Assembly: GCA_964188305.1 (NCBI GenBank)
Contig: OZ076888.1
DNA length: 64,000 nt
Reading direction: 5' to 3' (one strand)
DNA from: Podarcis bocagei
Taxonomy: Eukaryota
In this document: positions 19,523 to 38,671 of the stretch, in pieces
Position numbering within the stretch: position 1 is the first letter of the stretch
Layout: every line of letters begins with the position of its first letter
Notes under the pieces: model-generated
Databases searched by the model: none
Told to the model about the DNA's origin: nothing
Seen by the model: only the letters and a program-made list of their open reading frames with translations
Translations under genes and position numbers: made by a program

Positions 19523-20645
19523 CTATTACAAAAACAAACAAAGTCGACCTAATTGGAAATCTGGCACCTAGATTTTTATAGTATGGAGCAACACCTACAA
19601 CCAATTCTAACCCCCACTTTACTGAACAAGAGTAAATTAAATCAAAGCCTGTTTTCTTTTCCCATTTTTCTTATCTTTCTTTTAAACAGCGAACTGTGGC
19701 ATCTCACCAGAAAATGAACGCCTGGCAAAGGAATACATTTGCGCACAGTTTTGGAAGGAGGGGAAGGTTTGTTGCCACTTTTATGGCTAAATTTGGCGTT
19801 TGTTTACCTTCCCTTCCTTTCCTTATTTATTACGTAGTGTACACATAACCTTCCACGGCTGCACTGTAGTATTAGTTATTAAACTTGCAGTGCATTGCAC
19901 ACTTCTGATTAAACTGTTCAAATCACAATAGCGCCAGCTTTAGATATATTTTTTTTTAAAAAATAGATAAACACACGACAGGTTGTGGAATTTCTTTTTC
20001 CAAAAGGAGAGGGAGAAGGAAAAGACAACACAAGAAATATTAGAACAGGGAGCTGGTGATTTGCGAGTGATTTCAGCGCTCCCAGCCCCCACGTTTCCTT
20101 GTAATAATACATAAACTCGTACAGCTCAGATTACTTACAATAGCCCCACATAATTAAATATTTACAGAGGGTGAGAAATAGATAGCAAGGAAAGCTGAGG
20201 TTAGGTAGCCATATATTTAGCAGGATTTCTCACTGTAAGACAGTCAGTGCCCTCGACTACCAATTAATTAAAACCAATAAATTTTAACAATTCAGATCGC
20301 TGCCATCTTTTCCCCTCCACCCCACACCCTAATCTCCCCCTTTTTCCCTGAAACATTTAGAGCCCTACCTTATATTTGATTTTTCCCACTTAAAAAAAAA
20401 ATAAAGAAAAAGAAACGCAATGTTTGGTTTATAGTGCCAATTAATTCACCAGCTGAACTGAATCCGGCTCTTGGTGTGGATTTGTTTAAGAAAGGAGCCC
20501 CCCACCCCTATATTTATTCCCTAATCCCCCTCCCTCCCCCTCCCCCCTTTGATTTGTTTTGAGCTGCCTCCTCCTTGGAAAGCGCGAGAGTTCGCTTCAA
20601 CAGGCAACGGGCGGCTCGGCCCGGTCGGTTGGTTTGGGAACGTAC

Positions 20646-21636
20646 CTGTGTGCGTCCTTTTGTGGATCTTGAGATTTTCCGAGCGAGCGAAGACTTTCCC
20701 GCATCCCGGGAAAGGGCACGGGAAAGGTTTCTCCCCCGTGTGGACTCGGATGTGGTTGACCAGTTTGTATTTGGCCTTGAAAGGCTTCCCTTCCCTGGGA
20801 CACTCTTCCCAGAAGCAAATGTGGTTGGACTGCTCGGGCCCGCCGACGTGCTCCACGGTGACGTGAGTCACCAGCTCGTGCATGGTGCTGAAAGTTTTGT
20901 TGCAGGACTTTTTGGGGTTGGCCAACTGCTCGGGCTCGATCCACTTGCAGATGAGCTCCTGCTTGATGGGCTGGCGCATGTAGCGGAAGAAGGCCCCCGG
21001 CCCGTGGTGGGCTGCCATGTTCATATTCATGTGGCCGTAGCCGTGCAGCTGCGGCGAAGCGTAATGTTCGGAGCGCGGGCTCGTCACCTGGCCGTACTGC
21101 TCCGGCCGGCCGTACATGTCTCCGGAGAAGCCCAGGCGCATCTGCCCGTTGACCACGTTGGGCGACGCGTGGCCGGTGGCTTGCTCGTGGAGGCCCGGGA
21201 AGAGGAGGTGGCCCGCCGCCTCGCCGTGCCCGTGCGGTCCGCCGAAGCTGCCGGCCGCCGAGGCGAAGAGGCTGTGCTGGGCGCTGGCCGCCGCCGCCGC
21301 CTCGCCGAAGCCCCGGTTGCGGAAGAGAAAGTCCCGCGTGGAGTTGAAGGCGGCCGCGCTGGAGTACGAGCCGACGTGGCCCGGGTGGTGGTGGTGATGC
21401 CCCAGCGCCGCTGCGGCCGCGTAGCCAGGGGCCTGCGAAGTGAAGGCGGTCTGGCCGGCCGAGGCCAGCTCGTGGCTGCTGGGGTTGAGCTTGAAGGCGC
21501 CCATCCCGGCGTCGGCGAAAGGGTTGATGCCCAGTCCCACCTCGCGCTCCGTCACGTCGCCCGTGGCGTGGTGGCGAGAAGAGCCGAAGGTCGTCACTCC
21601 GATGGCGGGGTACTGCGGTCCGGCATCCAGCAACAT
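20646..21636 (-). CDS. ZIC1: ZIC1 coding exon 1 (N-terminus, ZOC box, ZF-NC, zinc fingers 1-3)
   Basis: ATG at 21636 gives [18 protein letters not shown]..., [13 protein letters not shown] (ZOC), [14 protein letters not shown] (ZF-NC) and C2H2 fingers up to HKRTHT. Phase-1 donor ACAG|GTACG at 20646/20645. The ORF-track start at 21669 is a TTG. Confidence 0.98.
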
Positions 21637-22600
21637 CTTCTCCCGGCTCTCAGGCAGCTGCGCCAGCAACCGCCGAGGAAAAGTGATGCAAAAATGAAAT
21701 AAGATTTAAGAAAATATAAATTAAGGAGGAAAGGGGGGGTGGGAGACGTGGAAGAAGTGGGGGTAAGCAGCAACAGCAGCAGCAGCAGCCAACAAACTGC
21801 CGGATCAGCCGACGAGGAAGAGAGCCGCCGTCGCCGCCGCCGCCAATCCAAGCAGCCTCTCTCTCTCTTTCTCTTGCAAAAGTCCGCGCGACGTTCACCA
21901 CTAAAGCGACCACATCAGGAACTCCCCCTTCGGCACCCGCGCACCCAAAACACACACACGCACACACACAAAACGAGAGGGTGGGTGAGGGCTTAGGGGT
22001 GGGCAGAGCCCGCGGAAGAAATCTAGAAGCTGCAAAAATTGGAGAATAAGAATAAAAAAGACATCGGCGCGCGCACAGAAAAACCGATCGCCCCCTCTCT
22101 TGCCTCTCGGACTGCACTTTTTCAGGGGGGTTCAATGGGAAGGAGGGAAAGGATTCAGAAGACTCCGCTCGCGAATAACAATGGTGAAGAGAGAGGAGGA
22201 AACAGGCTCAGACGGGGGGAGGGGGGATCAAAACAAAAATTAAACTTCCTTCAGTTCTGGTTTTTTTTTAATTTAAAAAAAGAGGCTAGAGGAATGTAGC
22301 GGACTAGCGAGCAATTTTCTCTTCTCTTCCAGTTCTTGCACTCTTTTCCCCCTTCCGTCTCTTTTCCCCCTCCTTGGGCTTTTTTCCCCCCTTCACTTTC
22401 CTTTTTTCCCCCTGCTTTGTTAAAAAAAAAAAAACGGCGCAAATCATGCACAATATTGTCTTTTGCGGTTTATCTTCCTGGGGAGAAACTTTCACCTCCT
22501 CAGCCGGGCGGTGAACGCGAGACTGATAGCGGCAATCATTCCTGCAGATAAATGAATTGAAAAGACGACACCGTCCCCCCCCCTTGATGAATGGGAGAAG
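21637..22600 (-). other. ZIC1: ZIC1 long 5' UTR with uORFs and CTG/GGC triplet runs
   Basis: Minus-strand CCATTCATCAAGGGGGGG...CTGCAGGAATGATTGC...GAAGATAAACCGCAAAAGACAATATTGTGC resembles the recalled mammalian ZIC1 leader. TSS position is approximate. Confidence 0.65.
22492..22539 (-). CDS. Putative ZIC1 uORF1, MIAAISLAFTARLRR*
   Basis: ATG at 22539 and TGA ending at 22492, within the leader; translation is not shown. Confidence 0.45.
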   Translation of the reverse strand: MIAAISLAFTARLRR

Positions 22601-36439: not shown

Positions 36440-37628
36440 ATGGACTCTGCTTCACTCTCCAAACGGAACACGGCGCTGAAATTACTAGGCTTGGCAGGGG
36501 CTCCTCGTCATCGTCATCACCGCCACCATCACCACTCCCCTCAGAGCATGACAGGCTTCGCCGGGCATCCCCACTCCATGGTTCCCACGCACCCTGGGGA
36601 GTACGCTGCAGAAAGCCGCCTCGGGCTGAGTCCATTCCGGTCAGAACACATGGGGCACCACTACCATCCTCTCCATCATCATCATCACCACCGCCACCAC
36701 TCTCATCCTCCTCATCACTCAGCGGCCCTTAAGCTCAGCCCTGCCCCTCAGCCTCATCCCCACCATCCTGTGACAGGCCAAGCCGAGGTGGTACCCAGTC
36801 CAGCAGGAGCATTTGGCCCGGCGCAGTCAACAACAGTCCCTTACGCAGTCCCTCACCCAAGTCATGCTCTTTCATCAGGTAGGGAATTCTTCCTGCGCAG
36901 AGATCTGACAGCCCCAGTCATGCCAGGGCTCCCTTATCAACACTCTGCTGCTACAGGTTCTCACCATGGAATGTTTGTCTCAACAACAGGTAGCTACCCC
37001 GGACACCATGCTCACCACCACCACCACCACCTCCACCACCACCACTCAGAAGCCGGAACTCCCTCGCTTTTTACTGGACTCCACCATGAGCAACCTCCCC
37101 ATGCAGCTCCAGGTGGCCATCTAAACGGACAGATAAGGCTGGGGCTACCTGGAGAAATGTATGCCAGGTCTGAACCTTTCACGCCAGTACCAGTCTCCAG
37201 GACAGATCCTTTTGCTGCTTCCTCCTTCCACGGCTACGGTGGCATGAACCTGAACGTGAATTTAGCTCCACACCACGGCCCTGGGGCTTTCTTCCGCTAC
37301 ATGAGGCAGCCCATCAAGCAGGAGCTCATCTGCAAGTGGATCGAACTGGACCAGACTCCCAAAAAATTATGCTCCAAAACTTTCAGCACCATGCACGAGC
37401 TGGTGACTCACGTCACCGTGGAGCACGTTGGAGGGCCGGAGCAGTCCAACCACATTTGCTTCTGGGAAGAGTGTCCCAGAGAAGGGAAGCCTTTCAAGGC
37501 CAAATATAAACTGGTCAACCACATCCGAGTCCACACGGGGGAGAAACCTTTCCCTTGTCCTTTCCCGGGATGCGGGAAAGTCTTCGCTCGCTCGGAAAAT
37601 CTCAAAATCCACAAAAGGACGCACACAG
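36440..37628 (+). CDS. ZIC4: ZIC4 coding exon 1, long non-mammalian-type N-terminus (His-rich, ZF-NC, zinc fingers 1-3)
   Basis: [20 protein letters not shown]...[19 protein letters not shown]...HKRTHT; phase-1 donor ACAG|GTCAGT. Head-to-head with ZIC1, as in the known ZIC1/ZIC4 pair. The start codon is less certain than the 3' boundary. Confidence 0.93.
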
Positions 37629-38671
37629 GTCAGTATGGAAAGGTCTTTCTTCATTCGTGTTTTGTTCAACTATCTGCTGCATGTGCGATCTCCCCCACCC
37701 CCGCCCGCTATAATTCTACATAGACTTAATACTAGCCAATGAAGACCGGATCAATAGTTTGTTTTGATTGTTGTCTTTCGTTTGAAGAATTGAGGCGTGT
37801 GTGTGCATAATGCTGACGTGTATGTGTATGTGCGTATGCAAGAAAGGTCTTCCATGATTTAGATCGGGATTTCCTGGAGAGGGGAGAGTTAAAAAGCCCT
37901 ATAGAGACGGAAAAGCATCCAATCTTGATGCAAGCTCGCAAATTAGGAGCGAACAATGGAAGTTGCAACTTGTCTAGGCAGTTTTGAGTGATGCTGCTGG
38001 GATGCTGCTTCTGCCGCCTTCCTTGTGAGAAAAGCACAGCTGCAAGGTCCCCTCTTTTTGTTTTGTACGAGGAACCCTGCGATGTTTCATCCCAAGTCTT
38101 CGTAAGAGCCTTTTCCTTCTTAAAGTGCTACGGAGATTGAAATATGGGAAGGTGCTCTTTAGGAACCTGGGAAGGAAAGAGGGGAGTAGTGGTGTGTGTT
38201 TGGAGTTAATTTTGTCTTCCTAGCATGTTCTTTTTGAACGGTCATTGGCCAGAATTATGAAGGAATTTTTTGTCAGAAATAGGAACAATTTCTCGTTAAG
38301 ACAGAAAGGAAAGTTATTTGAAGGGGAAGACCTTGCCAACACCCTCTTTGACCTCGGAATCCACAGAAGCATCTGTGGTGAATGAATGAAACTGGCGGTA
38401 TAAAGTTTTCAGACTTCCAAATTCAGCCTGTGAAGTTGTAGAGAGTTAGTTTAGCAGCCGGTCTTCTTAGCTTTTTATTGCCTTCTCCACTCCATTCCTT
38501 CCTATCCGACTCTCTTTCTCTCTCACACACACACCAGAAGATAATAAATAAGCCCTTTTGGAAAATTAAATCCGTTCCACTGTGCAGTTTTTTGCACACA
38601 CACTCCACAGCCTTATAAACTCCCAGGAAAACGACATAATCCTATTGTAAGATATCCTTACAACCCAACGA

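Follow-up and report, generated by a model that had tools for sequence, protein, structure and literature searches.

Gene conversion very probably keeps a 252-nucleotide zinc-finger segment alike in the head-to-head ZIC1 and ZIC4 genes of several vertebrate lineages

Introduction

In the palindromes of the primate Y chromosome, non-crossover intrachromosomal conversion from arm to arm keeps inverted copies near-identical, in the manner considered here for ZIC1 and ZIC4; the palindrome arms extend over kilobases to megabases, include noncoding DNA and are > 99.9% identical. At the gamma-globin genes and at RHD/RHCE, short tracts bounded by loss of homology pass between linked paralogues and give rise to mosaic genes, and these pairs are young duplicates, tens of millions of years (My) old or less. 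Long-lasting concerted evolution has also been described for the mammalian pairs BMP8A/B, DDX19A/B and TUBG1/2 (Carson and Scherer 2009, PMC2720389). These duplications predate the eutherian radiation, and conversion between the copies is documented over ~100 My within mammals (PMC2720389); concerted evolution of two genes for more than 100 My is treated there as rare and noteworthy (PMC2720389). We have analysed a stretch of 64,000 nucleotides (nt) from the lacertid lizard Podarcis bocagei (GenBank assembly GCA_964188305.1, contig OZ076888.1; the window), in which the developmental transcription factor genes ZIC1 and ZIC4 share part of their zinc-finger exon as an inverted repeat. A first-pass annotation of the window, made from the letters alone, had read this repeat as a signature of gene conversion.

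Results

A near-identical exon segment in two diverged genes

ZIC1 (minus strand) and ZIC4 (plus strand) stand head to head in the window, with 14.8 kb between their start codons. A repeat search pairs 20644-20916 with 37358-37630 (273 nt, 95% complementary, 16441 nt apart), and codon alignment gives a core of 84 codons (252 nt, KTFSTM...KRTHT; Table 1), hereafter the tract, which covers zinc finger 1 (ZF1) after its second Cys, ZF2 and ZF3. According to published structural work on ZIC proteins, ZF1 and ZF2 form a structural tandem unit and are not DNA-contacting fingers.

Over the tract the lacertid paralogues differ at eight nucleotides, all synonymous (GTC/GTT, GGC/GGA, CCC/CCG, AGG/AGA, TAC/TAT, CCG/CCT, TGC/TGT and AAG/AAA), corresponding to an NG86 synonymous divergence (dS) of 0.165 and a nonsynonymous divergence (dN) of 0. 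Exon 2 serves as the unconverted control: 19 codons and 2 amino acids differ in its first 34 codons, 36 of its 162 nt differ overall, and its proportion of synonymous differences (pS 0.85-0.87) is saturated. Among degenerate codons that specify the same amino acid in both genes, identical and different codons number 74 and 8 in the tract vs 25 and 25 in exon 2 (Fisher p 6e-7). The first-pass annotation had described the inverted repeat formed by the two arms of Table 1, eight wholly synonymous differences over 84 codons, a strongly diverged start of exon 2, and an end of identity just past the splice donor. The repeat search and codon alignment bear out the first of these, both sets of counts are exactly those found here, and the 100 nt that follow the donor are only 22% identical in the lacertid.

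Paralogues resemble each other within lineages

For comparison we have used both genes of the skink Lerista edwardsae, five colubrid ZIC1 genes with the ZIC4 of Ahaetulla for the snakes, ten galliform ZIC1 genes with both genes of the quail Excalfactoria, both genes of the buffalo Bubalus, and a skate pair drawn from two genera and not from one genome (ZIC1 from Leucoraja, ZIC4 from Rhinoraja). Each lineage outside the squamates is represented by one ZIC1/ZIC4 pair. The 84 residues encoded by the tract are identical in nearly all orthologues fetched.

Between ZIC1 and ZIC4, the tract differs at 1 of 252 nt in the skink, 2 of 252 in the snake, 1 of 252 in the quail, 8 of 252 in the lacertid and 9 of 252 in the skates, and at 34 of 252 in the buffalo, where the paralogue dS is 0.97. 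The longest perfect run is 53 nt in the lacertid and 101-182 nt in skink, snake and quail. Exon 2 differs at 28-42 of 162 nt in every full-length pair. Comparisons between lineages give quite another scale. Squamates differ from one another at 9-18 nt of the tract, vs 1-2 nt for the skink or snake paralogues; squamates and galliforms are 34-39 nt apart, squamates and buffalo 32-39 nt, and skates and tetrapods 38-49 nt. The lacertid tract itself is 34-37 nt from quail, 35-39 nt from buffalo and 38-42 nt from skates. The paralogues are alike within a lineage, their silent sites diverge between lineages, and both genes change together. With high confidence we attribute this to concerted evolution of the tract through non-reciprocal interlocus gene conversion, acting within the chromosome between the arms of the inverted repeat. 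At the DNA level its signature is present in squamates, in the one galliform pair and in skates, and there is little of it in buffalo.

Phylogenetic analysis separates the two parts of the genes, the tract clustering by lineage and exon 2 by gene, as conversion predicts. For the tract, the tree unites the two skate sequences at 100/99 and groups both quail genes with chicken ZIC1 at 96/91; neither gene is monophyletic in any bootstrap tree, and the approximately unbiased (AU) test rejects a ZIC4 clade (p 1.3e-68). Exon 2, taken from these same sequences, gives a tree that splits the two genes with a support of 97/94, or of 84/94 when the ZIC1 donor triplet GTA is left out. A Sawyer-type permutation test of the kind implemented in GENECONV, run over a conserved upstream FFRYMRQ box, the tract and exon 2, is significant (p <= 1e-4) for five lineages (lacertid, skink, snake, quail and skates), and in these its best fragment lies mainly within the tract; in buffalo, the signal is confined to the upstream box and the tract's first 33 nt (p 0.002).

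The tract has the same edges in six lineages

The edges of the tract coincide in all six lineages compared. On the 5' side, identity ends at the codon preceding KTF, and the residues directly before KTF are gene-specific in all six (SCN in ZIC1 vs LCS or PCS in ZIC4); the ZF1 loop upstream of the tract differs in length by two codons between the genes. At the 3' edge, the last bases shared are the split G and the GT donor. ZIC1 introns begin GTACG or GTATG and ZIC4 introns begin GTCAGTA, the contrast beyond the donor being GTACG in ZIC1 vs GTCAGTAT in ZIC4. Both flanks are conserved among orthologues and not among paralogues.

A weaker upstream repeat contains the FFRYMRQ box (57 nt), which groups by gene in squamates (orthologues 0-1 nt apart, paralogues 3-4 nt) and was therefore rejected as part of the converted tract there. 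Its paralogues differ at 1 nt in quail and 0 nt in buffalo, and the box could form another mini-tract, converted separately from the first, although 57 nt are too few to settle the matter.

Shared private states and the direction of transfer

The three squamate pairs (lacertid, skink and snake) vary at 22 sites of the tract. At half of these (11 of 22), one lineage has a private state in both its copies (six sites in the skink, four in the snake and one in the lacertid), and seven of the 22 are singletons. The remaining four of the 22 (codons 17, 20, 43 and 59), two of which are transversions, split ZIC1 from ZIC4 in the lacertid, and each of the two states is fixed in both copies elsewhere. 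Both skink copies match lacertid ZIC1 at codons 17, 43 and 59, where the snake copies match lacertid ZIC4; codon 20 shows the opposite arrangement, the snake agreeing with lacertid ZIC1 and the skink with lacertid ZIC4. From this distribution we infer that the squamate ancestor already carried these four of the eight lacertid differences, later resolved in either direction. As the resolution runs in opposite directions at different sites, transfer would be two-way and piecewise.

These sites also bear on a more economical history, in which each major lineage underwent one old conversion followed by slow silent change, and the lacertid escaped for good. The window species itself fits such a course: its paralogue dS of 0.165 nearly equals the lacertid-snake orthologue dS (0.19-0.24), it has a single private shared state, and its longest perfect run is the short one. 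Because the window pair is the least homogenised among the converting lineages, its last homogenisation would appear to be old, the pair having gone largely unconverted for a long time. In birds, too, silent change is slow, with galliform ZIC1 tracts 0-1 nt apart across families (quail, chicken, pheasant and New World quail). However, the skink has six private shared states and the snake four, and the two resolve the split sites in opposite directions, so that no fewer than two separate conversions must postdate the squamate radiation, besides those in birds and skates; the paralogue differences of only 1-2 nt in skink, snake and quail further argue for recent events in those lineages. A small number of isolated conversions is thus an unlikely account of the whole pattern, though one that deserves to be kept in mind, and we favour repeated conversion of the pair.

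Silent sites of the tract are free to change

Nucleotide-level purifying selection would explain the similarity without any transfer, if an overlapping element (an enhancer, a splicing code or an RNA structure) had frozen the silent sites so that the paralogues never diverged. The coincidence of the tract edges with exon and protein features would suit such an element, as would a protein that is 100% identical across most vertebrates. The orthologues speak clearly against it. Orthologous dS in the tract ranges from 1.1 to saturated (1.1-1.5 for lacertid vs quail or buffalo) and is not below that of exon 2, so the silent sites of the tract are free to change; orthologues of different classes are 32-50 nt apart vs 1-9 nt for paralogues inside the converting lineages, and distant orthologues are therefore not as similar as paralogues. 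In addition, both copies change together at 11 sites among the three squamates, the buffalo genes have drifted 34 nt apart, and a search of 15000-45000 against Rfam found no RNA family match. We regard constraint as a very improbable source of the pattern, and gene conversion remains our preferred explanation.

Enrichment of G and C by biased conversion was also considered. GC content at third codon positions (GC3) in the tract is 0.45-0.52 in skates and quail, 0.67-0.76 in squamates and 0.65-0.81 in buffalo, and shows no consistent excess over the flanks or over the non-converting lineages. In the lacertid, ZIC1 GC3 drops from 0.915 upstream of the tract to 0.75 inside it, and the corresponding values for ZIC4 are 0.54 and 0.67. 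GC-biased gene conversion was rejected on these grounds.

Assembly and the intergenic spacer

An assembly or polishing artefact, with reads of one arm correcting the other or a collapsed repeat placed twice, might be suspected from the runs of N between the arms and from the known ability of short inverted repeats to mislead polishers, yet we give it next to no credence, since the arms keep their eight differences and each continues unbroken into its own gene-specific flanks, the N runs lie at least 2.7 kb from either arm within flanks colinear with other species, the pattern recurs in five independent assemblies, those of skink, snake, quail and skates among them, and the skate ZIC1 tract, joined by splicing to exon 2 of its own gene, is found unchanged in seven transcriptome assemblies, which rules out an artefact in that case.

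The flanks of the N runs are colinear, on the same strand and of matching spacing when compared with the uninterrupted sequence of skink, snake, quail and buffalo; the 140 N of the first run correspond to 140-147 nt in these four species, between blocks that are 79-93% conserved. The colinearity of these flanks means that the head-to-head order and the ~16.4 kb distance between the arms are sound. Both runs lie inside or beside deeply conserved noncoding blocks, the flanks being 79-93% identical to snake, quail and buffalo, and their sequence context suggests masking of conserved elements more than genuine gaps in the assembly.

Across the spacer (21700-36400), at least seven conserved noncoding blocks are common to the lacertid and quail and six to the lacertid and buffalo, in the same order and on the same strand; examples are 22429-22811, 23445-23917, 24991-25218 and 28923-29537. 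These blocks are presumably shared regulatory elements. Their order and strand are the same in lacertid, skink, snake, quail and buffalo, and inversion of the spacer by crossing over between the arms was rejected because all conserved blocks lie on the same strand in the four species compared with the window.

Distribution and escape

Proteins extend the survey to further vertebrates, and the following observations come from protein data only. Ray-finned fish ZIC4 (bichir, gar and teleosts) retains its own residues KTY and QAN, and in eutherians the Ser and Glu of ZIC1 correspond to Ala and Gln in ZIC4. The ZIC4 of turtle and of some frogs retains KTFT. Changes common to both genes also occur, namely Pro to Ala in some frogs and Ile to Val in a newt.

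In the frog Hymenochirus, the contigs recorded for ZIC1 and ZIC4 differ in length (293 Mb and 304 Mb), and the genes may not be neighbours; both nevertheless carry the derived Pro-to-Ala change in the tract.

Gene layout in the window

The features of the locus are collected in Table 1. The window exon 1 sequences are 99.7% (ZIC1) and 99.2% (ZIC4) identical to Podarcis orthologues, and both exon 1 products match Pfam PF18366 (E 5e-29 and 1e-27) and contain C2H2 fingers. The head-to-head arrangement is also present at the skink, snake, quail and buffalo loci, with a start-to-start distance of 15.0 kb in Lerista edwardsae.

Table 1. Features of the ZIC1/ZIC4 locus, in positions of the window
Feature	Position	Strand	Remarks
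ZIC1 exon 3	18249-18446	-	C-terminus ending EWYV; stop 18249-18251
ZIC1 exon 2	19359-19522	-	ZF4 and part of ZF5; unconverted control, grouping by gene
ZIC1 coding exon 1	20646-21636	-	ATG at 21636; Pfam zf_ZIC, zf-C2H2_15, zf-C2H2
ZIC1 arm of inverted repeat	20644-20899	-	last 84 full codons of exon 1 (20647-20898), split G and GT donor
Weaker upstream repeat, ZIC1 side	20926-21032	-	83%; contains the conserved FFRYMRQ box
Head-to-head intergenic spacer	21637-36439	.	conserved noncoding blocks and two N runs
N run 1	23596-23735		intergenic spacer; 140 N; outside arms and all exons
N run 2	26486-26626		intergenic spacer; outside arms and all exons
ZIC4 coding exon 1	36440-37628	+	ATG at 36440; long His-rich N-terminal part
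Weaker upstream repeat, ZIC4 side	37248-37354	+	83%
ZIC4 arm of inverted repeat	37375-37630	+	matching 84 codons (37376-37627), split G and GT donor
ZIC4 last coding exon	42463-42920	+	ZF4, ZF5 and C-terminus; stop 42918-42920
ZIC4 last coding exon, first 54-57 codons		+	unconverted control

ZIC4 carries ZF4, ZF5 and the C-terminus in a single exon, without a counterpart of the ZIC1 intron after KHMK, and this layout of two coding exons is also found at the skink, snake, skate and buffalo loci. The ZIC4 frame runs ~40 codons beyond the EWYV motif at which ZIC1 ends. The N-terminal part of ZIC4 (36440-37200) is very His-rich, with several runs of 4-7 His and ~310 residues before the fingers, in contrast to the short N-terminus of eutherian ZIC4. 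GA/CT microsatellites occur at 18040-18119 (ZIC1 3' region) and 38661-38728 (ZIC4 intron). Many of the other inverted-repeat pairs reported by the search are low-complexity chance matches from such microsatellites, and were set aside as unrelated to the conversion tract.

Discussion

Taken together, the private states shared within lineages, the gene-specific flanks, the constant edges and the normal divergence between lineages support the conversion that the first-pass annotation had proposed. It had further described the conversion as recurrent and the DNA-binding fingers of the pair as kept homogenised by it. Recurrence is a property of the gene pair across vertebrates rather than of the recent past of this lizard, with its one private shared state; homogenisation is seen across squamates, quail and skates and is not universal, the buffalo having largely escaped.

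In the proposed mechanism, a copy that suffers a double-strand break or gap would be repaired on the template of the other, without crossing over and in both directions (ZIC1 to ZIC4 and ZIC4 to ZIC1). The heteroduplex would be halted on the 5' side by the unalignable ZF1 loop with its two-codon indel and on the 3' side by the unrelated intron, and with heterology stopping it on both sides the island of identity would sustain itself. Selection against importing the ZF1 loop of the other gene may sharpen the 5' edge. The process could already have been running in the common ancestor of jawed vertebrates, or it could have been re-ignited later, and it would have lapsed in buffalo and probably also in the ray-finned fishes.

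How old is the island? Because skates and sauropsids both convert, the tract was probably homogeneous already in the jawed-vertebrate ancestor, as far as sequence comparison can tell. The broadest reading is that homogenisation of the island dates back beyond the split of cartilaginous from bony fishes (~450 My ago) and has gone on ever since, either without a break or with rare re-ignition, with edges that are base-precise and have not moved, and that eutherians and ray-finned fishes escaped independently. We find the balance for and against this reading to be even. Several points temper both this reading and the conversion account in general. Continuity over 450 My is inferred, and rare re-ignition between copies that are ~86% identical may have taken its place; the evidence for conversion is indirect, from sequence comparison. 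The skate comparison spans two genera (Leucoraja for ZIC1, Rhinoraja for ZIC4), lineages outside the squamates contribute a single pair each, and the window species has one private shared site only (codon 26). If the broadest reading is correct, the tract would be among the longest-running cases of vertebrate concerted evolution in a single-copy protein-coding pair, and would suggest selection that keeps the fingers of both genes co-evolving.

There are also practical consequences. Trees of the ZIC family that rely on the zinc-finger domain mislead where ZIC1 and ZIC4 are concerned, as the tract reports the lineage and not the gene, and orthology calls, probes and primers placed in the tract exon cannot tell the two genes apart in sauropsids or elasmobranchs. 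The converting lineages and those that have escaped (buffalo, probably ray-finned fishes) form a natural experiment on the part that identity thresholds, heterology barriers and selection play in ending the exchange between paralogues, and the contrast also bears on whether the zinc-finger function of ZIC4 is free to diverge from that of ZIC1. A full-text literature search, whose scope did not extend to subscription papers on ZIC evolution, found no report of conversion between ZIC1 and ZIC4. The mechanism is known; this case, its age and its fixed, exon-precise edges appear to be new.

Unlike the Y palindromes, ZIC1 and ZIC4 share only 252 coding bases, 16.4 kb apart, inside genes that are otherwise diverged and have distinct functions. 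Unlike the gamma-globin and RHD/RHCE genes, they are an ancient pair, saturated everywhere except in the tract. The closest resemblance is to BMP8A/B, DDX19A/B and TUBG1/2, which are likewise two-member pairs with only specific segments homogenised and with paralogues closer than orthologues in several lineages (PMC2720389); BMP8A/B, like ZIC1/ZIC4, is even in inverted orientation (PMC2720389). Unlike in those mammalian pairs, the split between ZIC1 and ZIC4 predates the jawed vertebrates and is more than 450 My old, as the exon 2 tree separates the two genes from skates to mammals. What is homogenised here is a single stretch of one exon, 252 nt long, whose edges coincide in cartilaginous fishes and sauropsids, and it is the mammal that has escaped. 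Homogenisation of this tract in skates, squamates and a bird extends the timescale to several times more than 100 My, in genes that are key developmental transcription factors.

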